In this document: piece after piece, positions 6,976-17,742 of the stretch
Position numbering within the stretch: the first letter of the stretch is position 1
How the letters are laid out: every line of letters begins with the position of its first letter
Source: Bugula neritina
Taxonomy: Eukaryota > Animalia > Bryozoa
Length of the DNA stretch: 21,870 bases
Assembly: GCA_964035545.1 (NCBI GenBank)
Contig: CAXIUT010000158.1
Coordinates: 1 to 21,870, forward strand
Reading direction: 5' to 3'
The notes under the pieces: generated by a model
What the model saw: only the letters and a program-made list of their open reading frames with translations
The model's database searches: none
Told to the model about the DNA's origin: nothing
Translations under genes and position numbers: made by a program

Positions 6976-7836
6976 CTAAGTCATATACTTTTTCACCAAC
7001 TCTTCGTTCAAAACTTGATCAACAGACAATCTCTCTAACGACGAAATATCAAATGGTTTCAGGCTTTTAATATGTTTTTTTATTTCATTTGGAACTGATT
7101 GATAATATAGATAGTACGCATCTCCTTGCATTTTCTCCTTATGCCTCTCAAGAAATGGTTTTACATATTCCCAACTTCCTATTGACATATCCTCAACCTT
7201 CTTAAACAGTTTTCTCGGTGCTAGTTCCTTTCTTCCAATTAGTAAAATATCGACTGGTGGTATGATTGAAGGGATAGCATCAGGCCATACACATGCTGTA
7301 ACGACGCGGCCTTCATAATTCAGCAGCATAATGGAAGGTACAAATACATCATCAGTAACCTGTTCCTGAAGTGTCTCCTTGTTATTATTCCATACCCAAA
7401 AATCTTCCAGTTTTTTTGTAGGTAGGCAAAAAATCTCAGGATGGTTTTTTAGAATAGATTGATAACTATATTCATTCCCATGCAGCCACCCACTTCTGAA
7501 TTTATCTAAGTCAAAATTTCCCGAGCCCATTCCATTCATTTGATGGCCATTTACTTCTAGATCCAACTTTGAAATTAGCTCTAAAAGTTCAGGTTCAGCC
7601 TCTTTGATGAAATATGTTGGTCTGAAGTAGTTCATATTGAAAACAATAGGAAAATAGTCAGCTTCACTTTTTTCAAATTCTTGATACTCAAAAACGAAAT
7701 AAACTCCTGTAGCTTCATTTTGATACCAAGCTTGCTTCCCTTCTAGGTTATATTTGTCACGACCTTGAAAGTAAGAATCGAACTGTTCTTGAGAAAAGAC
7801 GCCGCTCTTTGGCTTTAAAAAAAGATCGTAACTCAT
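6976..7836 (-). CDS. Hypothetical protein
   Basis: 286-aa ORF with AAGG RBS. No family recognised. Confidence 0.75.
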   Translation of the reverse strand: MSYDLFLKPKSGVFSQEQFDSYFQGRDKYNLEGKQAWYQNEATGVYFVFEYQEFEKSEADYFPIVFNMNYFRPTYFIKEAEPELLELISKLDLEVNGHQMNGMGSGNFDLDKFRSGWLHGNEYSYQSILKNHPEIFCLPTKKLEDFWVWNNNKETLQEQVTDDVFVPSIMLLNYEGRVVTACVWPDAIPSIIPPVDILLIGRKELAPRKLFKKVEDMSIGSWEYVKPFLERHKEKMQGDAYYLYYQSVPNEIKKHIKSLKPFDISSLERLSVDQVLNEELVKKYMT

Positions 7837-7893
7837 GTACCTTATCCTTATTTTCGGATTAACTTCCCGCTAAACTGTGGTCGATACGAAGTA

Positions 7894-8391
7894 TCAAGTT
7901 TGCTGACCCCTCGATTTGTTGACAAGCTTTTCAAACCTTTGAACCTCAGATAAAAAGCTGTGAAGGTAGCCAAGTGAACCCATTATGGAGGCCAGACACA
8001 GGGCAGCCTCTTCTGACATTCCGTCTATTTTCCTCGTTTCTGGGTCAAATTCCTGATCATAGATGGATGCTAATGACTGAACCGCCTTTTCTCTTCTTCC
8101 AGGTTCTAGTGAATGAGATAAAGTATTTCGTAACACATTTATCTTTTTAATTAGGTTCCACATGTTGTTGCGGTTATCGCTTACCGATATAGATTTACAT
8201 AACTCCAATTTTTGATGAAATTGAAGCCGGGCATCTTCTATGTGTTCACCATGCAGAGCGAAAGCCTCAAGGGCTTGATTCATTAAGTCTTCAGCAACAA
8301 GATGGCCTTTAAGAAGTATTTGAGCCGTGTCATCAACAAACATGACTTCTTCAGAGAATCTCTTTTGGATGTCTTCTAATGTGTCGGCCAT
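7894..8391 (-). CDS. Hypothetical alpha-helical protein with a HEPN-like Rx4H motif
   Basis: 165 aa. LLKGHLVAEDLM near the N-terminus and INVLRNTLSH (R-x4-H) in the C-terminal half, the layout of HEPN/MtlR-like proteins. Confidence 0.6.
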   Translation of the reverse strand: MADTLEDIQKRFSEEVMFVDDTAQILLKGHLVAEDLMNQALEAFALHGEHIEDARLQFHQKLELCKSISVSDNRNNMWNLIKKINVLRNTLSHSLEPGRREKAVQSLASIYDQEFDPETRKIDGMSEEAALCLASIMGSLGYLHSFLSEVQRFEKLVNKSRGQQT

Positions 8392-8499: not shown

Positions 8500-10284
8500 T
8501 TACTTGTCACTTGTATCCCCCACAGAACACGCTGCAAATCGTAAAATTGTCCCCGACTGCATGGTGAAATTTTTTACGGTGAGTACGTTGGAAAAAGTAT
8601 TTATTTCTGATTCAAGTTGTTTCCATTCGCGGCCGTTTAATGCCCATAGTTTTAGATCGGATTCTTTAACGTTATGACCGACTTCATTTCTTTGTGAATT
8701 TTCCTGTAGGTATTCAAGTTGTAGATCCATTGTTCGATCATGGTATGGAGAGAGTAACGATAAATACCAATTTCGTTGGATACAAGATTCTGAAGAATAA
8801 GTCGGTGGTAAGAGTGTTTGTGCTTGATCAATTTCTGATTCGGTACTGAATTCCGCCGGGCCGAAATCATCTTTTAAACGAATGCCACTTAAGGCAAAAC
8901 CATATGCAGGTGCGGTTATTAATTTATATTTTCCGTCTCCCGGAACGGTAGTTCGAACACGTAAATCCGTTGGGAAAGGATCACGCTCGGGTTGTTCTTC
9001 ATCGTAATTCCAGGTCGCTTTTTCGGCATCCCATTGGTATTCGCCTGTGAGTGTTTCTTTTAAATAGGCGTAGCGACGTTGTGAATAATGCCAGAGACTT
9101 TCAACTTCATTTTTGTAATCAATATTTTTCTCTTCCAGGAAGGGATCGTTTTCATGAAACGTTTCAAGCTTCGCGGCCATTTGATCGATTCTTGATTTTA
9201 ATTGATCGGGATGAAACCAACCGAAGTTAGTTTTTGATACCTGTTTTTCTATACCTAACAAATGTAATAAGCGTGCAATAATTTTTTTGTTTAGTGTTGG
9301 GTTACGAAAAACTTTTTCCTTTAATGGACTCGCAGCGCCGAGTTGTGGAGGATAATAATATTGAAAATTATCATTCAAAATACTTTTCGGAAATTCCAGA
9401 AAAGGATCCCAGTTGCGGCCAAAGCTTAGATCATAATCCCATGGAATGATGATCCATTTTTTTGTTGTTTCTGGTTGGTAGATAAAATAATTTTTATTAT
9501 AAGTGTCACCATTGCTGGTGAGGATGTTAAGGGCTAGCCAGTTTAGAACAGAATCTTCATCAAAGTTTTTTCCAATGTATTGATCAAATTCTTCTATGGG
9601 CGTTTTGTTTATTCCACTGTAGGCTTCATATAATGGTGAAAAGTCATTATCACCGGGCGCAAACTTAAACCAGCAGTCATCGATATTTTTATTTTCATAA
9701 TAACGAAAATCACCACAAAATCGTGAGTCGATGGGATGAAAAAATTGTCCGGCTTTTCCTAGTCCAAAACGATCAAACAGTGTTGTATCGATCCATTCTG
9801 TTTGTAAAAAAACGCCGTGATATTTTTCATTAATATAGACACGAATATATTCGACCTTTGGACCGACCATGCCAAGATCTTCAATCATCTGCCAGGCCAA
9901 CCATTCGCGTAACATGGAACCATCGGTCGCCATTCCATCCAGAGAGATTCTTTGTTGATCATTCCATTTCTGATCGCCATCCAATTTTATGATCAGATTT
10001 TTTTTACTAAAACGCCGGGAGAAACTGCCAGAAACTTTTATTCTGCCGGATAGTTCTTGTTTGCCTGTATCGATCACTTTCACCGCAAATGAAGATTTAT
10101 CGTTGTATTCTTTTCGGAAGAGTACTTCAGCATCTAACTCATCCATGGTGAGATGTATTTCACCTATTTCATTTTGTATCGCAGCCGTTGTTTGAACAGG
10201 AAGGAAAAAAACAGACAAACAAACAAAAGATAAAATTGATCGAATTTTGTTTGAATGATTTTTTCTTGTTATATCGTTACTCAT
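8500..10284 (-). CDS. Exported CotH-family atypical kinase with C-terminal extension
   Basis: CotH motifs: IKVSGSFSRRFSKKNLIIKL, MLREWLA, VYINEKYHGVF, NGDTYNKNYFIY, IIPWDYDLSFG, RRYAYL. Start placed at ATG 10284 (MSNDIT...), 2 nt after the upstream stop, followed by a signal-peptide-like segment (ILSFVCLSVFFLPVQTTA). Confidence 0.85.
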   Translation of the reverse strand: MSNDITRKNHSNKIRSILSFVCLSVFFLPVQTTAAIQNEIGEIHLTMDELDAEVLFRKEYNDKSSFAVKVIDTGKQELSGRIKVSGSFSRRFSKKNLIIKLDGDQKWNDQQRISLDGMATDGSMLREWLAWQMIEDLGMVGPKVEYIRVYINEKYHGVFLQTEWIDTTLFDRFGLGKAGQFFHPIDSRFCGDFRYYENKNIDDCWFKFAPGDNDFSPLYEAYSGINKTPIEEFDQYIGKNFDEDSVLNWLALNILTSNGDTYNKNYFIYQPETTKKWIIIPWDYDLSFGRNWDPFLEFPKSILNDNFQYYYPPQLGAASPLKEKVFRNPTLNKKIIARLLHLLGIEKQVSKTNFGWFHPDQLKSRIDQMAAKLETFHENDPFLEEKNIDYKNEVESLWHYSQRRYAYLKETLTGEYQWDAEKATWNYDEEQPERDPFPTDLRVRTTVPGDGKYKLITAPAYGFALSGIRLKDDFGPAEFSTESEIDQAQTLLPPTYSSESCIQRNWYLSLLSPYHDRTMDLQLEYLQENSQRNEVGHNVKESDLKLWALNGREWKQLESEINTFSNVLTVKNFTMQSGTILRFAACSVGDTSDK

Positions 10285-10286
10285 TA

Positions 10287-11114
10287 TTATGGCCCCCAAT
10301 GGCGGCTGAATGTGATGCCGAATTTTGTACTTTGTCCTGAGTTTCTTCCCCATATCACACGAGAAGCAGAAACTTTATAGCGCCAGTCGTGATTGAGTCG
10401 ATCAGACCAGCTGACTTTTGCATTTAATTTGTCGTAATCCGAAAGCTGAGTTTCATCAGCAAAATCGTTATTTGTATTCCCTTCATTTTGAAAAGAAATA
10501 TCTGCGCTTAAACCCATGCTTATGCGCCCCGTCTTTCCGATGTGTCGACGAACCGTTGCGTAAGCTAAAAATTGATCCGCTGGTCCGCTCATCCATAAAC
10601 GTACCGACGCACCAGTTAGAAAATCCCACTTTGGTGCAAAGTCTCTTTCTTCTCCACGAGAAAGATAGGCCAGCCCTCCTTCGATTCCGAACTCACCATT
10701 GCCTGGTCGAGACCGGTTGCTACGTGAATAACCAGTTGGAACAATGAGCGTGACTTCCCAGGTTTTACCATTTTCGAAAACGTTAAGGCGTCCACGAATA
10801 CCGAGACGTAAATCCCCAAGTCCGCTGTAGTCCTCATCACCGCAATGTTTGTCGATCAATTCCAGGTTAGCAACCAGAGTGTGATAATAACTATATCCAT
10901 ATTCAAGCTGATGATTTGATCGAAAGGTTTGCGAGCGACAACTGGAATCTCGCAGGTTACTACTTCGGTTCCAGCTTTTATCACTGGTTGAATAACTGAG
11001 CCCACCGGAATAATAGGTTTCACCTTCCGATAACATCCACGGACTGACTGCATAACTTTCCTGCGGAATGATCAAAACAGGAAATAAAAAAAGAGAAAAT
11101 ATTAACTTGTACAT
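10287..11114 (-). CDS. Putative outer-membrane beta-barrel protein
   Basis: Signal peptide (..ESYA-V). Repeated amphipathic alternating strands (YYSGGLSYS, LEYGYS, GLGDLRLGIRGRL, VPTGY, LNAKVSWS, WRYKVSAS, FGITFSRHW). Trp/Tyr/Gly/Ser-rich. Confidence 0.7.
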   Translation of the reverse strand: MYKLIFSLFLFPVLIIPQESYAVSPWMLSEGETYYSGGLSYSTSDKSWNRSSNLRDSSCRSQTFRSNHQLEYGYSYYHTLVANLELIDKHCGDEDYSGLGDLRLGIRGRLNVFENGKTWEVTLIVPTGYSRSNRSRPGNGEFGIEGGLAYLSRGEERDFAPKWDFLTGASVRLWMSGPADQFLAYATVRRHIGKTGRISMGLSADISFQNEGNTNNDFADETQLSDYDKLNAKVSWSDRLNHDWRYKVSASRVIWGRNSGQSTKFGITFSRHWGP

Positions 11115-12160
11115 TCGCTGATTTTCCTCATAAAAAGGCTGAACGGTGAACCCCAGTGTTGATGAACAACCGCTTGAGCCAATTTATTTTGTACGGTGTA
11201 ACTTGTGTCATTTTGGCCGCCAGCTTGTGGGGAGCTGCTCCACTGCCAGATCCAGATCCCTTCGATATTTGACGATTTAGATGTGTTGGATTTTTCTAAC
11301 GAGCTTAACCAACGACGGATCAAATCTGCTTGCGTATTTGGATCTGCCGAGGGTGAAGCTGTTTCCAGCCCACGCCAATCCCAGGGTTTTGCCTCCCACC
11401 CTTTTGCTGAAGGAATGCCCACTTCGAGAATCCAGACGGGTTGTTGAAAACGTTCTGCGAGTGTTTCCAATTGTTCGGTCAGCGTATCGGTGATCCGTTC
11501 TTGCGTCATGTCGGGATACAATGTGACACCTATCGAATCAAGTAAATCCCAATGAGGGAACGCTTCAATCCCTGCAACCTCTCCCGCGGCATAGGTTAAT
11601 TTTCCAGAATAAACCGCACGCAGTTTTTTGATCAATTCTGGCCAATGCAGGCTCTCCTGAATTTTTCTTAATTCGGTCCCAATGACAAACGCATCGACAT
11701 GATAAGTTTCTGCTAGCCGTGCATAGTTTAAAAGCTGATTGGTATAATTTTCGAACCAGCTTTTTTCTTGTTCTTGACTCGAAAATGTAATCTCACCTGC
11801 CCAGGAATTGTCAATTAAAATTTGAGGTTTAAGTACACGGTGTAAGCGCTGTTTTTGCGACAGTTCCAGCGCTGCAATCAATTGTTCGTCAGTGACAGCA
11901 TCACTTTTGCTGATTTCGTCAGATTGCGGTGTGTCTTGTTTTAAAAACGGGACAAGAATAATGGAATTTGCCCCTGTCAGGCGCAAGTGCTGCATGGATA
12001 AGCAGGCGCCCGTTGAGTTCATGGCGGTGTGGCGATCCTGCAAAAAATTAAAACCAACCAGATCTGGTTTAGAAGAATAATCACAACCATACAAGCTATA
12101 AATAGTCAGGATCAAAAATAATGAACGAGGCTGGTTTATCGAATCAATTTTCATTTTCAT
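11102..12160 (-). CDS. Glycoside hydrolase, GH113-like (clan GH-A TIM barrel), probable lipoprotein
   Basis: GANSIILVPF, VLKPQI, W.GEI, WFENY, FVIGTEL (acid/base Glu), YSGKLTYAA, WDLLDSIGV..YP, PVWILEVG (nucleophile Glu), GIWIWQW, YTVQNK. LYGC lipobox-like motif. The start is probably MKMKIDS at 12160 rather than 12190. Confidence 0.8.
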   Translation of the reverse strand: MKMKIDSINQPRSLFLILTIYSLYGCDYSSKPDLVGFNFLQDRHTAMNSTGACLSMQHLRLTGANSIILVPFLKQDTPQSDEISKSDAVTDEQLIAALELSQKQRLHRVLKPQILIDNSWAGEITFSSQEQEKSWFENYTNQLLNYARLAETYHVDAFVIGTELRKIQESLHWPELIKKLRAVYSGKLTYAAGEVAGIEAFPHWDLLDSIGVTLYPDMTQERITDTLTEQLETLAERFQQPVWILEVGIPSAKGWEAKPWDWRGLETASPSADPNTQADLIRRWLSSLEKSNTSKSSNIEGIWIWQWSSSPQAGGQNDTSYTVQNKLAQAVVHQHWGSPFSLFMRKISECTS

Positions 12161-13652
12161 AGACTCGCCAGCCCGCGTAATCATAAACACGTTTGAAGCC
12201 AGTCATGCCTTCTTTATAAAGATCCGGATAAAGGAGGTTTATTCGGTCTCGGCCACCCGTTTTGGTAGACGGATCAGGTATGACGATGAGATCGGTATCA
12301 GGCCGTTGGAAACGCGTTTGAATCTTAAAGTTATCAGAAATGGGTAAGTGAAGTTGGTGAGCATCCCCTTTCGCGACGATCGCACGGTAAGCACTGCGTT
12401 CGTCGATCAATATATCTTTATTTTTTTGTTTAGTCAGCCATTCACCGAGCACTGCATCTTCATGATATAGCTCACCAGAAAGACTATTTGTGAAGGCCAG
12501 ATACCAGTGTCGCATTTCGGGCTCTGTATATTGCGCGAAACGATGCCAGCCAGAGAGTGAGCCTATTACAAGTAAAATGATCAAAGCGGGGAATTTCCAA
12601 CGCCTTGCAAATGGGATCATGGTTAATTCAGCCATGACACCAGCGCTGATCAAAGCCAGTATTTCTAATGGGTGAAACAGGAAATATTTGCTACTGGCAA
12701 AGGCAATCGCAATAACCGGATGGAATAACAAAATGATGCTGGCTTTAAGATGATTACCATAACGCGCGGCGAGTGGTAATAACAAAAAGACCACAGGGAA
12801 AAGAACGCCAAGTTGTAAAAAAGCAGCAAATAGCGGCGCAAGCCAGAGTCCACCATACTGCCTTAACCATTCAGAAGTTGGTGTGTCTTGCCAGCCACCA
12901 AGAAACGATGAATCGGGCTCGCGTGCAAAGATGAGTGCGCTTCCTTCAAAAATCCAGTTTAGATAAGCCCAGGATAAAACCGCAATTAATAGCGGCATCG
13001 CGATCATCAGATAAACACTGATTGGAGAACTTAATAAAATTTTCCGCGGGGCAATAATAGAAAGAAAGGGAACCAGTGCAATAAACAGAAACAATGCAAT
13101 AGGATCTGCAAAAAAATACAGCGCGAGAATCATACCCAGTAAGATGAATGAACGCACATCCTCTTGATAGATCATGCGTAGACATGCTCGATATAAGAGA
13201 TAAAACATCAATAAGCTGATGGCGGTATAACCACCACTGGTTGCAGCCCAAAGCACGGTTGGTTGGCTGATGATCAATAAAATAAGTAACGCCCTTTGCC
13301 ATACTGGTCGTGCGTTTCTACGCAGGTGGTGATTCCATAAAGCTAACAAGATTGCGACAGTCAGCCCTGAAATAAAATAGGGTGCGGCGGCTTGATAACC
13401 ATCTGGTAACCATGTGAATGGGATAAGCATGTAAAACGGTGCATGTGGATAGATAAAGCGAAAATGCTCCATGCGAATGGTTTCCGCATCCATCACTCCG
13501 AGCACTTTTGCCCAGCGGAACATTGCAATATCACTAACGTAATGATTACTTAATAACCACAGACTACACATGGCAAAAACCAGTGTGATCAACATCAACA
13601 CAATGAAATTATGGTGCCGACGATTGCTTGTTTCTGCGATCACCTCTGCCAT
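12144..13652 (-). CDS. Polytopic membrane protein, GT-C-like (ArnT/PMT-type) putative glycan-modifying transferase
   Basis: About 10 or more hydrophobic helices, a first loop containing YPHAP, and a soluble C-terminal domain of about 130 aa. This architecture is typical of GT-C enzymes. The ATG overlaps the GT2 stop (TGATG). Confidence 0.55.
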   Translation of the reverse strand: MAEVIAETSNRRHHNFIVLMLITLVFAMCSLWLLSNHYVSDIAMFRWAKVLGVMDAETIRMEHFRFIYPHAPFYMLIPFTWLPDGYQAAAPYFISGLTVAILLALWNHHLRRNARPVWQRALLILLIISQPTVLWAATSGGYTAISLLMFYLLYRACLRMIYQEDVRSFILLGMILALYFFADPIALFLFIALVPFLSIIAPRKILLSSPISVYLMIAMPLLIAVLSWAYLNWIFEGSALIFAREPDSSFLGGWQDTPTSEWLRQYGGLWLAPLFAAFLQLGVLFPVVFLLLPLAARYGNHLKASIILLFHPVIAIAFASSKYFLFHPLEILALISAGVMAELTMIPFARRWKFPALIILLVIGSLSGWHRFAQYTEPEMRHWYLAFTNSLSGELYHEDAVLGEWLTKQKNKDILIDERSAYRAIVAKGDAHQLHLPISDNFKIQTRFQRPDTDLIVIPDPSTKTGGRDRINLLYPDLYKEGMTGFKRVYDYAGWRVYENEN

Positions 13653-15592
13653 CAGTTAGAGCCCGTTCGTGTTATGGGTGGTGGAATTATTTCTTCATGG
13701 TCATGTGAAGTAAGTCCATGCACGGTCTTTTCCCAATAAAAAGGATCGTGAATTAATTGCCATAATGCTCGATAGGCAGCAACTGACATTAAGATCCAAT
13801 AAAGAGGAATGGTAAGCGCCCAGGGGATTAAGTTATAAAGCTGTCGTTTGAATACACTCAGGGTTGAGAGATAGATCAATATACCGTTACCGATAAGCAG
13901 GTTAAACAGACTGATATAAAGAATGAACCCTGGAAATAATAAATCTAAAGCGTGGGTTTGAGTATAGAGCCAGAAGAAGTACATAAAATATAAAAACGGT
14001 GCCATCAGTGCACTTAAGACTGCGCCGCCAATGAAAAATTGAAAACCCCAAAAAGCCCCGCTTCCGAGTGAGCGATATAGATCTATCGGGTGACGCATGT
14101 GAACCAGGTAAGTTTGCATGTAGCCTTTAATCCAACGAGAGCGTTGTCGGATCCAGTTTCCAAGATGGCTGTTTGCTTCTTCGTAAGTTGTCGAATTAAC
14201 CACACCAACACGGTAATTTAGTTGTGTATATCTTACGCCCAGATCGGCATCTTCAGTGACGTTGTAGGGATCCCAGGCATCGACTTCTTTGAGGATATGC
14301 ATTTTAAAATGGTTAGATGTTCCACCAAGCGGGATTGGGATTTTTAATGCTTCAAGCGCTGGCAGATAAAAATCAAACCATAGTGAATATTCAAGGGTAA
14401 ACATTCTTGTTAACCAGTTTTCATTCGCGTTGAAATAATTCAATCTAGCCTGAATGACCGCAGTATTGTCCGGTGCTTTTCTGAATGCGACGACAGCTTT
14501 TTTGAGTTGATCAGGTTCTGGTCGATCTTCTGCATCATAGATGGTGACTAGTTCACCGCGTGCAAAACTAAGAGCATAGTTGCAAGCTTTCGGTTTCGTT
14601 TTAGGCAGAGAGTCAGGAACCCTGATTATTTCAAATATGCCCTCTAAACCGAGCTCTTTTGCCGCTTGTACGGTTTCGTCGTCGTCATCTTCCAGGATCA
14701 GTTTTATATCCAGCTTAGATAATGGATAATCGAGATCCCTTATTGCAGAGGTAATAATGGGTAAAACTTCAGGTTCTTTATACATCGGAACCAATACAGT
14801 ATAGGTCGGCAGATCTTTATCTGTTAAGGCGGCTACTTCTTCATCCGTTACCTTCACATCAATTTGGGTGTCTCCTCCAACCCAGGCAAAAAGTATTCGC
14901 AATCCAAAATTGAGTAATAAAAAGAGACAGATAAATAAGTTTATGGCGATTAATGCTTTAATCGGCCAAAGCGTCACCGCAAGCATAAGCAGTGTAAGAA
15001 TGATAAAGATCCAGATTAACTGTGCCGTTGTGAAAACTTGTTTTGCGGAATTGACGGGTTGCTTGTTGGCGAGATCATTAACGGCATTATCAACTAAGAA
15101 ATCTTTTGCTTCTCGTTGGACAATCCAGATGATGTCAAACTTAGAGGTGATTACAAAATCATATTCACCGTCGGTTTGTTCGTGCATATAGTAAACCGCT
15201 TCCGGTGAAGGATCGGCACAAACAAAGATCGTTTTGTCTTTTTCTTTTCTATACGGAAGGACTAAATGTTCGGTGTAATGATCAATTTCCTCATCATGCC
15301 ATAATGATTTATCGGGAGGTACTTCCATCATATTGATGAAAGGCTTGTTATATTGCCCGGCAAGTACCCGATAAAAGGCAAATGGTTGTACCCAACCTTT
15401 TGAGATCAAAATGTCTCCAAGTCGGGTTCCCCATTTTTGCTGTAAAGCGAGCGCCTTTTCCAGATGATCGGCCGTAATTAAGCCTTTTTCAAGCAAGAGT
15501 TCACCCAAAGGAATGAACTTCGTCGATTTACGATCGGGCGATCCAGGTGGAACGTTTGCTCCAACGCCTCTATCAGAGGTGTCGTCCGCCAT
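13652..15592 (-). CDS. Processive GT2 polysaccharide synthase with N-terminal MshEN (c-di-GMP-binding) domain
   Basis: Cellulose-synthase-like motifs VLVPMYKE, EDDD, TKPKACN, IYDAED (DxD), LGGTSNHF, VTEDADLG, RQRSRW (QxxRW), WEKTVH. Two TMs precede and several follow the GT domain. Tandem MshEN motifs at aa 28-80. No PilZ domain. The ATG overlaps the upstream stop (TAATG). Confidence 0.92.
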   Translation of the reverse strand: MADDTSDRGVGANVPPGSPDRKSTKFIPLGELLLEKGLITADHLEKALALQQKWGTRLGDILISKGWVQPFAFYRVLAGQYNKPFINMMEVPPDKSLWHDEEIDHYTEHLVLPYRKEKDKTIFVCADPSPEAVYYMHEQTDGEYDFVITSKFDIIWIVQREAKDFLVDNAVNDLANKQPVNSAKQVFTTAQLIWIFIILTLLMLAVTLWPIKALIAINLFICLFLLLNFGLRILFAWVGGDTQIDVKVTDEEVAALTDKDLPTYTVLVPMYKEPEVLPIITSAIRDLDYPLSKLDIKLILEDDDDETVQAAKELGLEGIFEIIRVPDSLPKTKPKACNYALSFARGELVTIYDAEDRPEPDQLKKAVVAFRKAPDNTAVIQARLNYFNANENWLTRMFTLEYSLWFDFYLPALEALKIPIPLGGTSNHFKMHILKEVDAWDPYNVTEDADLGVRYTQLNYRVGVVNSTTYEEANSHLGNWIRQRSRWIKGYMQTYLVHMRHPIDLYRSLGSGAFWGFQFFIGGAVLSALMAPFLYFMYFFWLYTQTHALDLLFPGFILYISLFNLLIGNGILIYLSTLSVFKRQLYNLIPWALTIPLYWILMSVAAYRALWQLIHDPFYWEKTVHGLTSHDHEEIIPPPITRTGSN

Positions 15593-17742
15593 TAGTAACG
15601 ATCCCGATGATCCCTGTGTTGTCTTGCACGTCTAAATAAGTAAACGATGATCAATGTCAGAATCAACCAGCCAATGGCAAACAACCAGAAACGGTACTTA
15701 CCAAGTAAGGCTAACCAATCTCGCGCCTCTGGGTAATGCGTTGTTGCAAGTGTTGGTTGTTGACTGTTCATGGTAAACAGCAAACCAGAGCGATCTGCAA
15801 AGGCAACATCATCATGATTCAGGAATAATTTCTTGATATCAGGAAAGCCTTCCTTATTTGTCGAGCGCAACCATAGCCCTTTTTGTTCTTTACTTGTGAC
15901 GAGTTGAGCGATTGTGACATCGGGAAGATCTTCAACTTTGAGTAGCGGAGTTTTGTTGCGATCTATTATCTGTACTTCACCTTGATCAAATTTTACCGGT
16001 GACTCAAGACTGTCTAACTTAAGGTCGCCAATAGCAATAAAAGGTCTCTCAGGTATAACGAGTGAGCCCGTTTCTGAAAATTTAGCTACGCGCGTTTTGA
16101 AAGGCACAGGTAGCCGTGACGTTAAAGCTGATACATAAGGTAAAGAATCAAACGGTACTTCTAAGTAATTTTCTGGCAGATAAATATCAAAATTGTCAGC
16201 AAAATATACGGGTAGTTCAGAAAAGAACTTAGGTTCACTTTGGTCACGCTCAACTATAAGTGAACTGTCAGGAAGAATCTGTACAGGAAAAGCGGCTAAA
16301 TCGGCTCGGCAATCTCCTTGAGGGTCTATATTATGAACCTGGATTTGAATTCGGTTATAAGGTTCTTGATAGTTTAGTGGCAAAGGAATAGAAATTTCCT
16401 GACGGGTTTGACCATCAACCAGACGAGTTGCGTAGATCATAATGTCGTTTAAATAAACGTATAATTCAAACGGTGGTTTTTCCGGCGGTGGCGGTGCCAT
16501 GATATTCAGGAATAATCGATTTGGTCTTGTACCCGCAGGGATACGGAACGGATCTAACACTAGATTCCACTTGAGATTAGATCGAACATAACGCGTAGAG
16601 GTGTCAGCCCCTAAATCCGCCAGTTTTATCTCAAGGGTATTTTCAACAGCAGGTATACTGCCAAGGCCGCTGAGGTTATCAGCATAGTCAACAGTAAAAG
16701 ACTTATATTGTCCGTTTATGCCTAATTTACGCCAGGGGTTATTCATCAACTGAAAAGCGCCGGTCTGTTGAGGATCAAGAATAGCGATCAGGCTACGCAC
16801 AGGGCTTTTCACCAATGCCATGTTGGAAGTCTTGATATCTTCGCTCAGTGTGTAGCTATTACTTTCCTTATGTTCAAGATCAACAAGTTCTTGCTGGAGT
16901 AGTTGTTCAAGCTCAGTATGTTTTGCCACAACGATATGGCCAATTGCGGGAAATTTTACGACTTCAACTTCTTTTCCCTGGCGTTTGAGGTTGTCTAATA
17001 ATTCCCACGCAGCATTAAATTCCGCTGGGTTAAATTCACGATCAGGGATAGATAATGAGATCTTGCGAGGCATGAGAGTCCAGGCGTCGCGTAGAGAACC
17101 TACTTCACCTGAGTAATGCATGGTGAATGTTGATTCCGGATCAATATGTAAATTACTGCCATTTACACGTGAATCTAAACAACGATCTTCCGAGATGGGT
17201 AGTGCTGCACGAACAACAAGGCGCACGCTGCCATTACGTAAATATCTTTTTGGTATATCAGCAATTAATAGCTGATCTATTCCTTTTGAACTAAGGCGAA
17301 CTTGTTCAAGTGGGAAGTTATCAACTGAGAGTTGTAAATTTGCAAGATCATTGAGAAGAGGAGAAATTCGATACTTCAGGTGAATATTTGCATTTTCAAT
17401 GGTCGTATCACTCGGTAGAGGAAAGTCGAGTTTGACCTCGTGTATGGTTTCCGCACCTTCAAAAATAATGCCTTCTTTATAACCTATATCACCGAGTTGT
17501 AACGTAAAGCCATTTAAGTTTTGTTGATCAGCATTGATAAAATCGTTTGATAACAAAAAAGATGGGCTATACATAATGTTGCTGTTGTCTATCAGCATCC
17601 ACGCGGGCTTTGCATTTATAGAAATAGTAGTTTCAGCGTAAGTTGTGGAAAAGTAGCCGGTGAAAATAAAGAATACCAGCGATAAAAAGTAGTGAATGTT
17701 ATTACTAAAATGGATATGAATTTGTGATTTTTTTTGTGACAT
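15592..17742 (-). CDS. BcsB-like periplasmic co-polymerase subunit
   Basis: Signal peptide (..TTYA-E). Two repeats each starting L.D(I/L)G and ending (I/V).I.P(E/D)S, with one Cys in each (EDRCLD, QGDCRA). C-terminal TM anchor FWLFAIGWLILTLIIVYLF followed by RRARQH. Lies directly upstream of a GT2 synthase. GGGAG RBS. Confidence 0.75.
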   Translation of the reverse strand: MSQKKSQIHIHFSNNIHYFLSLVFFIFTGYFSTTYAETTISINAKPAWMLIDNSNIMYSPSFLLSNDFINADQQNLNGFTLQLGDIGYKEGIIFEGAETIHEVKLDFPLPSDTTIENANIHLKYRISPLLNDLANLQLSVDNFPLEQVRLSSKGIDQLLIADIPKRYLRNGSVRLVVRAALPISEDRCLDSRVNGSNLHIDPESTFTMHYSGEVGSLRDAWTLMPRKISLSIPDREFNPAEFNAAWELLDNLKRQGKEVEVVKFPAIGHIVVAKHTELEQLLQQELVDLEHKESNSYTLSEDIKTSNMALVKSPVRSLIAILDPQQTGAFQLMNNPWRKLGINGQYKSFTVDYADNLSGLGSIPAVENTLEIKLADLGADTSTRYVRSNLKWNLVLDPFRIPAGTRPNRLFLNIMAPPPPEKPPFELYVYLNDIMIYATRLVDGQTRQEISIPLPLNYQEPYNRIQIQVHNIDPQGDCRADLAAFPVQILPDSSLIVERDQSEPKFFSELPVYFADNFDIYLPENYLEVPFDSLPYVSALTSRLPVPFKTRVAKFSETGSLVIPERPFIAIGDLKLDSLESPVKFDQGEVQIIDRNKTPLLKVEDLPDVTIAQLVTSKEQKGLWLRSTNKEGFPDIKKLFLNHDDVAFADRSGLLFTMNSQQPTLATTHYPEARDWLALLGKYRFWLFAIGWLILTLIIVYLFRRARQHRDHRDRY

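Follow-up and report, generated by a model that had tools for sequence, protein, structure and literature searches.

The closest described system to the locus analysed here is the cluster sfz1-sfz6 ("stalk formation in Zetaproteobacteria"), in which a BcsB-like protein (Sfz1), a glycosyltransferase of family GT2 (Sfz2) and a glycoside hydrolase (Sfz4) stand with two unknown proteins (Sfz3 and Sfz5) and with Sfz6, which combines SH3 and CotH domains (Koeksoy et al. 2021, PMC8250860); Sfz6 was left without a function in PMC8250860, and no later functional work on the sfz genes was found in the literature. The window, a stretch of 21,870 bases that makes up the complete contig CAXIUT010000158.1 within the 216-Mb, 321-contig assembly of the bryozoan Bugula neritina, carries six closely packed genes on its minus strand, from 17742 down to 8500, in the identical order and with similar sizes (about 500 amino acids (aa) for Sfz3 and about 300 aa for Sfz5). 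The last of them encodes a CotH-family protein, and the original prediction, made from the sequence of the window, described this protein as an exported kinase at the end of a Gram-negative polysaccharide operon. The six-gene, synthase-dependent operon bears out that placement, but the novelty implied by it was overstated: CotH as the sixth gene was published as sfz6 (PMC8250860), so the association of CotH with such an operon is not new, and secreted CotH proteins also occur in Gram-positive pel loci. Thus, there is already a record of a Gram-negative polysaccharide operon that ends in a CotH gene, and the window is an SH3-less member of a published cluster type in a new host lineage. The reading preferred here, tentatively and with slightly less than even confidence, is that CotH is an exported CotH-fold phosphotransferase, the terminal accessory enzyme of an sfz-type system gated by cyclic di-GMP (c-di-GMP), and that it phosphorylates the polymer. 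The genes of the operon are as follows.

15592..17742, minus strand: gene 1, BcsB-like periplasmic co-polymerase, 716 aa (Pfam BcsB PF03170, E 5.5e-17), the equivalent of Sfz1
13652..15592, minus strand: gene 2, synthase with an MshEN-type c-di-GMP-binding domain, a GT2 domain and C-terminal transmembrane (TM) segments, 646 aa, the equivalent of Sfz2
12144..13652, minus strand: gene 3, polytopic membrane protein with about nine TM-like segments by TM scan, 502 aa, the equivalent of Sfz3
11102..12190, minus strand: gene 4, glycoside hydrolase of GH113, a mannanase-type family of clan GH-A (Pfam GH113, E 2.6e-43), with lipobox LYGC, the equivalent of Sfz4
10287..11114, minus strand: gene 5, outer-membrane beta-barrel candidate with a signal peptide and conserved motifs, 275 aa, the equivalent of Sfz5
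8500..10284, minus strand: gene 6, CotH-family kinase of 594 aa, last in the operon and the short, SH3-less equivalent of Sfz6

By its gene content, the operon is a synthase-dependent, c-di-GMP-gated exopolysaccharide secretion system of the Bcs-like kind, with a GT2 synthase, a BcsB partner, a GH113 hydrolase and a barrel candidate. The synthase matches Pfam Glyco_trans_2_3 (8.7e-21) and MshEN (2.9e-4), its c-di-GMP motif exceeds the NCBIfam cut-off (NF053729, 65.6 bits vs 38), and its identity is 56-92% across loci with the full operon. The BcsB-like protein has an N-terminal signal, a C-terminal TM-like segment at residues 685-703 and a position that matches related loci. The 502-aa membrane protein matched nothing in a Pfam search and is possibly a GT-C-like glycosyltransferase, an Atlas feature search having given a lead toward clusters of the PMT_2/ArnT type. 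The equivalent of Sfz4, named a family 10 hydrolase in PMC8250860, is placed in GH113 by Pfam; it is probably a membrane-anchored periplasmic lipoprotein because its N-terminus carries the lipobox LYGC followed by D. NCBIfam has no named family for CotH, the barrel, the GH113 protein or the 502-aa protein. The polymer probably contains mannose, as judged from GH113 and from the ManC genes that stand beside the clusters of relatives in Zetaproteobacteria and others.

The ATG of the CotH gene at 10284 sits 2 nt past the stop of the barrel gene, with a Shine-Dalgarno-like GGGGG 9-13 nt upstream, and the closest orthologue starts at the identical position; an alternative ATG at 10353 would merely lengthen the N-terminal region. 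The two open reading frames (ORFs) 3' of CotH (6976-8391, minus strand; 165 aa and 286 aa) are without family and without counterpart in related loci, and therefore the operon appears to end at CotH. Mariprofundus aestuarium CP-5, which has sfz homologues according to PMC8250860, carries a collinear cluster with GH113 and a 662-aa CotH protein that is 34% identical to that of the window. Sfz6 proteins are 1415-2270 aa long, with N-terminal SH3 and C-terminal CotH domains; the protein of the window, at 594 aa and without an SH3 match, is therefore a short form of the sixth gene product, whereas other orthologues carry SH3_3 and SH3_4 domains.

The association of CotH with this operon was followed in a scan of one genome per species, from which 80 loci were compared. 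The six-gene order recurs, in a clade of at least 33% identity, in Gammaproteobacteria, Desulfobulbaceae, Azoarcus, Thiobacillus, Gallionella, Piscirickettsiaceae and Mariprofundus. As an independent marker that guards against circularity, searches were also begun from the Sfz3-like protein, of which a true homologue is found in 6 of 401 sampled genomes of Gammaproteobacteria; in all six, CotH lies 3.5-4.4 kb downstream on the same strand, and on metagenome contigs it lies downstream in 11 of the 12 close loci that could be assessed. CotH is thus present in most homologous operons, where its absence would have told against the original prediction. Distant operons that combine GT2 and GT-C-like proteins contain CotH in 3 cases out of 27 and gave no GH113 match. 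CotH is therefore, as gene content across these loci indicates, a clade-specific accessory and not a part of the core synthase. The wider family of operons with MshEN-type GT2 and GT-C-like proteins (metagenome loci L113-L158), mostly without CotH or GH113, often has a barrel-like gene just upstream of the synthase and ManC nearby. About ten of the 27 distant operons carry a barrel-like gene next to the synthase.

The CotH protein matches Pfam CotH (PF08757) over residues 82-408 and over the full profile (1-322) with an E value of 8.5e-51 (173.8 bits vs a cut-off of 23.8), and matches Bacillus cereus CotH in the Protein Data Bank (PDB 5jd9) with an E value of 3.9e-21. A model made with AlphaFold2 (AF2) from an alignment of 28 orthologues has a predicted local distance difference test score (pLDDT) of 86 and a predicted template modelling score (pTM) of 0.86. 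The superposition on Bacillus CotH that had been proposed as a check was clear: residues 38-420 of the model align with 5jda at Z 36.1 with a root-mean-square deviation of 2.6 A over 352 residues and 23% identity (VIA), and Foldseek gives a TM-score of 0.87 by target and an E value of 7.4e-23. The three motifs that had been read from the sequence (IKVSGSFS, NGDTYNKN and PWDYD) are all present, and the parts of the protein lie as follows.

10180..10284, minus strand: signal peptide, residues 1-35, predicted cut after TAA (sequence, hydropathy and model)
9010..10164, minus strand: CotH kinase domain, residues 41-425 (superposition on 5jda)
10018..10041, minus strand: N-lobe strand IKVSGSFS, residues 82-89, which holds S85 (alignment)
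9490..9513, minus strand: catalytic loop NGDTYNKN, residues 258-265, with D260, K264 and N265 (D-x4-N), aligned with NFDGFVHN of B. cereus CotH
9430..9444, minus strand: PWDYD motif, residues 281-285, with D283 and D285, the region of the metal-binding Asp, aligned with PWDYD of B. cereus CotH
8503..8991, minus strand: C-terminal beta-sandwich, residues 432-594, with the invariant Cys pair C501/C586 (model)

The roles of residues were assigned by sequence alignment to 5jd9 and from the mutants quoted in PMC7821199, in which the D228Q and D251A forms of Bacillus subtilis CotH are inactive; D251 corresponds to either D283 or D285 of the window protein, both of which fit the alignment. All 28 orthologues, at 34-77% identity, keep D260, K264, N265, D283 and D285. 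Since loss of catalysis would be expected to cost some of these residues, catalysis is probably retained, and by family, fold and catalytic residues CotH is predicted to be a catalytically intact CotH-fold kinase. Other fold neighbours of the model include PI4K-II, CtkA and HipA (Z 10.7-11.8, with PI4K-II-alpha at 11.8), MavQ (Z 10.1) and Fam20 (Z 8.6-9.1). The likeness to Fam20-type secretory kinases that had been put forward is thus real, but it is weak and no closer than that to PI4K-II, CtkA or HipA. Glycan kinases of the Fam20B/POMK type were considered as the family of CotH and not adopted, the Fam20 likeness being one of distant fold alone.

The signal-like N-terminus of CotH was confirmed: basic residues precede a hydrophobic stretch at 14-32 and the sequence TAA|IQ, where the cleavage site was read by eye, and the AF2 model has a helix at 4-26 and a disordered linker before the fold begins at residue 41. 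Hydrophobic, signal-like N-termini are found in all CotH orthologues; lipobox-like motifs were counted in 16 of 120, roughly a dozen of which convince by eye. There are exactly four Cys in the mature protein and none of them varies, C190/C204 lying in the kinase domain and C501/C586 in the C-terminal domain, a pairing within domains that is the pattern of disulfide-bonded extracytoplasmic proteins and suggests two disulfides. Because of the signal-like N-termini, the lipobox forms and the Cys pairs, CotH is very probably exported.

The beta-rich C-terminal extension was likewise confirmed, with 12 strands over residues 432-594 or thereabouts and a pLDDT of 91.9 when modelled alone, and it is conserved throughout the clade. 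It has no Pfam match, and Foldseek against the PDB returned nothing at an E value of 0.001 or better. The best matches in a wide VIA search are an axonemal protein (Z 8.8) and a GAIN domain (Z 8.7), followed at Z 6-8 by the accessory beta-sandwiches of rhamnosidases, dextranases, GH98 enzymes and xanthan lyases and by ZU5 domains, all at Z values that VIA rates as common arrangements; an Atlas search found resembling domains in secreted proteins of Bacteroidota. The suggested carbohydrate-binding module (CBM) label was rejected, because there is no Pfam family and no specific PDB match and the best hits (Z 7-9) are generic beta-sandwiches. The domain is best described, from its model, as a conserved beta-sandwich outside assigned families.

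The gene directly upstream of CotH is the barrel gene in 49 of 50 assessable loci, and the pair is kept together apart from synthase genes in loci such as L027, L042-L044, L046 and L055. One of these is Ferriphaselus sp. R-1 (L055, 8766-11674), in which the pair lies away from any synthase gene; stalk-forming Betaproteobacteria including Ferriphaselus were reported to be without homologues of sfz5 and sfz6 (PMC8250860). Among barrel homologues, one matches PF13557 at 4.3e-8 and another matches OMP_b-brl at 0.003, and an Atlas lead agrees. The 275-aa protein is probably an outer-membrane barrel, a grade set by the PF13557 match of one homologue and the Atlas lead, and it is the sole candidate for the outer-membrane conduit. 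Prediction of a complex between mature CotH and the mature barrel gave an interaction score (ipSAE) of 0.56 vs 0.00 for the best control, with partner pLDDT of at least 82 and runs that agree in at least 65% of contacts, for which the verdict of the tool is "weak support". Of the 78 solved complexes in the benchmark of this score, 51 came up to the mark, against 2 of 108 mismatches; scores of 0.60 or below account for only 5 of the 78 solved complexes and for all 4 passing mismatches. The modelled score is compatible with physical pairing of CotH and barrel, and no more.

In the mechanism preferred here, CotH would be exported by the Sec pathway and work in the periplasm, at the outer-membrane barrel or close by, where it would transfer phosphate to the nascent polymer leaving the cell. 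Phosphorylation would turn a neutral glycan anionic, comparable to the decoration of cellulose with phosphoethanolamine by BcsG. For most relatives ATP is the proposed donor, which would be delivered to the periplasm through a TLC/NTT exchanger whose gene comes right after CotH; in the lineage of the window the TLC gene is not linked, and the supply of donor there is left outside the scheme. The polymer is favored as the target because CotH is an accessory at a late stage of the operon, because cell-wall-type SH3 domains are added in many orthologues, because a streptococcal homologue affects the level of polymer, and because the nearest fold neighbours other than CotH include kinases of lipid and sugar hydroxyls (PI4K-II, MavQ and Fam20, at the Z scores given above).

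The original prediction asked what the phosphoryl donor could be in a periplasm generally considered ATP-poor. The question stands, and it can be tested through the linkage of CotH to TLC genes in relatives, which is the one new point here. In 26 of 42 assessable loci (including L005-L017, L019, L033, L037, L054 and L082), the next gene after CotH, on the same strand, encodes a TLC/NTT-family transporter with 12 TM segments, and 20 of these 26 transporters are at least 35% identical to the copy of Mariprofundus. Four representatives score above the Pfam TLC threshold (PF03219; 31-40 bits vs 21), and a profile of the CotH-linked transporters matches solved ATP/ADP carriers (9j3n, E 3e-21; 9j3j, E 1.6e-13). 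TLC genes were found in 62 of 401 sampled genomes, comprising 6 of 6 that bear sfz and 56 of 395 others (Fisher p = 1.1e-5, uncorrected for relatedness), and of five more clade genomes in which no TLC gene adjoins CotH, four have a copy elsewhere. Next after the CotH-linked TLC gene of Zetaproteobacteria come ManC, an AMIN-amidase and an MsbA-like ABC exporter. An "ATP-ADP antiporter" was listed among the genes neighbouring sfz, with no link made to CotH (PMC8250860); free-living bacteria are known to have NTT genes, which are uncharacterised (PMC5381601), and a literature search found no paper that ties them to exported kinases. A TLC-family exchanger in a free-living cell is expected to release ATP to the periplasm and to take up ADP, as an exported kinase would require, direction and substrate both being putative. 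That sfz-type CotH is a periplasmic kinase of the glycan or of the outer-membrane conduit, fuelled by a dedicated NTT/TLC exchanger that passes ATP out and ADP in, is an unlikely conjunction as a whole; if true, the Gram-negative periplasm would for the first time be credited with a dedicated ATP supply line, a role would be found for the uncharacterised NTT genes that free-living bacteria carry, and Gram-positive pel loci would meet the same need through an exported-polyphosphate module.

Several points weigh against phosphorylation of the polymer and against its supply by the exchanger. The characterised CotH enzymes phosphorylate proteins and not glycans, and the activity of the members of this clade is predicted; the cleavage site of the signal peptide and the disulfides are inferred, not computed; the C-terminal domain is not assignable to any carbohydrate-binding family; and the score of the CotH-barrel complex counts as weak support only. 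Six of the 26 adjacent transporters are only 23-25% identical and may be other proteins of the major facilitator superfamily (MFS). No TLC gene stands beside CotH in the window or in its three nearest relatives (L002-L004), and by tblastn the window has no TLC remnant; the rest of the cassette that neighbours sfz (ManC, amidase and MsbA-like exporter) is likewise absent from the window. Searches of the assembly with a protein query and with the family did not find TLC, a miss that shows nothing because the assembly likely holds only part of the bacterial genome. The unlinked TLC gene of the nearest relative shares just 29% identity with the CotH-linked type and seems to be of a widespread kind; genes that resemble it in size and have the same match pattern are found in sampled genomes without an sfz cluster. 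In the region L089:1409-7603, that unlinked gene adjoins genes for a DUF1631-GGDEF-EAL protein and for a Ser/Thr kinase that has a domain for binding cyclic nucleotides (cNBD), a neighbourhood that recalls the NTT-cNBD associations (Major et al. 2017).

The main rival is that CotH is an exported protein kinase that acts on Ser/Thr of the barrel, the GH113 protein, the BcsB-like subunit or secreted matrix proteins and thereby regulates or patterns secretion instead of altering the glycan, a reading judged somewhat unlikely but a serious competitor. All characterised CotH enzymes are autophosphorylating protein kinases, the authors who described the pel loci proposed regulation through protein phosphorylation (PMC7112168), and the constancy of the barrel-CotH pair, its survival apart from synthase genes and the complex score against its control would all suit such a kinase. 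Against this, about ten distant operons that lack CotH have a barrel-like gene next to the synthase, so that the barrel can do without CotH; no conserved repeat of phospho-acceptors like those of CotB or CotG is evident; and the complex score falls in a range where, according to the tool, passing scores are wrong more often than right except for guesses that were likely beforehand. Phosphorylation of the polymer is preferred over this rival on the grounds of target given above.

Other transfers are known from atypical kinase folds, and polyphosphate might serve as the donor in place of ATP, or nucleotidyl groups might be transferred rather than phosphoryl groups. The CotH of Gram-positive pel loci travels with a VTC-like polyphosphate polymerase and DUF4956, and the lineage of the window has no linked TLC gene, both of which would suit such chemistry. 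The D-x4-N loop and the Asp pair, however, are the standard kinase set, invariant and aligned with B. cereus CotH, whose crystals contained Mg2+/AMP, and family scans of the ORFs of the window identified no polyphosphate polymerase gene, so that another chemistry or donor is considered quite unlikely. It is more improbable still that CotH is mainly a structural or binding partner of the barrel, a periplasmic scaffold as PelC or AlgK are elsewhere, with its own catalysis dispensable: the tight pairing with the barrel gene, the lipoprotein forms of some orthologues and the extra binding domains (SH3_3 and SH3_4) of others would fit a scaffold, but pseudokinases usually lose catalytic residues, and here all of them are invariant at 34-77% identity while neighbouring positions drift.

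Least credible of all is the original suggestion that SG in place of the usual RG in the N-lobe reflects altered use of donor or acceptor: B. cereus CotH does have R at the aligned position, but position 85 varies within the clade (K 13, S 8, L 4, F 2 and Q 1 among 28 orthologues that share the operon type) while G86, R90 and K94 nearby do not vary and 25 of 28 keep R81, so that the change carries no signal and is, as the alignment has it, a subclade trait at a position free to vary and no hint of altered chemistry.

The contig is bacterial, with a G+C content of about 35-45%, and carries the block ndk, rlmN, tetratricopeptide repeat (TPR) protein gene, rodZ and hisS, housekeeping genes typical of Gammaproteobacteria. 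Its nearest public relatives are metagenome-assembled genomes (MAGs) of Gammaproteobacteria, the closest being a 3.3-Mb MAG whose CotH is 77% identical and which shares the ndk-rlmN flank. The source of the contig is a symbiont or a contaminant, and the host of the operon is an unclassified gammaproteobacterium that is not known as an iron oxidiser. The gene ndk, which is divergent and upstream of the operon, was considered as a gene related to the donor and rejected, because ndk-rlmN-TPR-rodZ-hisS is a conserved housekeeping block; it is present in the nearest relative too. Elsewhere on this gammaproteobacterial contig (732-1133, minus strand) is a gene for a 133-aa protein of the avidin family (PF01382, E 1.3e-18).

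For the window alone the outcome is more modest, a published cluster type being now recorded from a gammaproteobacterium that is either host-associated or a contaminant. The wider significance is that the periplasm is taught as ATP-free, yet a kinase with a conserved active site appears to be exported there as a fixed part of a polysaccharide machine across many phyla. If the adjacent NTT feeds the kinase, the view of envelope biochemistry would change, and the presence of "parasite-type" nucleotide transporters in free-living bacteria would be explained. The sfz cluster is the only genetic candidate for the iron-oxide stalks that are used as biosignatures, and the function of the sixth gene, for example in making the polymer anionic, bears on how stalks bind iron.

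The atypical-kinase fold class of Fam20 and type II PI4K can phosphorylate the hydroxyls of sugars or cyclitols, and Fam20B phosphorylates xylose; Fam20 and PI4K-II share with CotH this general fold and no detectable sequence relationship. CotH of the Bacillus spore coat (5jd9, 5jda) shares both the fold and the catalytic motifs, but it is a protein of about 360 aa without signal peptide or C-terminal beta-sandwich that acts in the mother cell on CotB and CotG, whereas CotH of the window is predicted to be exported and belongs to a polysaccharide operon of a diderm. BcsG is the periplasmic phosphoethanolamine transferase of cellulose secretion in Escherichia coli. Phosphoethanolamine (pEtN)-cellulose is described in PMC11470070. 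The resemblance to BcsG is one of analogy only, in that a periplasmic enzyme adds a phosphate-containing group to a polymer made by a synthase while it is in transit; the fold of BcsG is unrelated and its donor is a membrane lipid and not a nucleotide, so that no homology is claimed. Gram-positive pelDEADAFG loci have genes for secreted CotH as accessories next to a polyphosphate polymerase (PMC7112168), and deletion of the secreted CotH-FN3 gene SIR_1594 of Streptococcus intermedius results in less Pel and less aggregation (PMC12345266). The pel loci differ from the operon of the window in their GalNAc-rich Pel polymer, in the FN3 domain at the C-terminus of CotH, in having polyphosphate polymerase and DUF4956 instead of TLC, and in the lack of an outer membrane. 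Like CotH of the window, however, pel-locus CotH is secreted and appended to a synthase-dependent exopolysaccharide operon, and like the TLC-linked relatives of the window it is adjoined by genes of its own that could supply phosphate.

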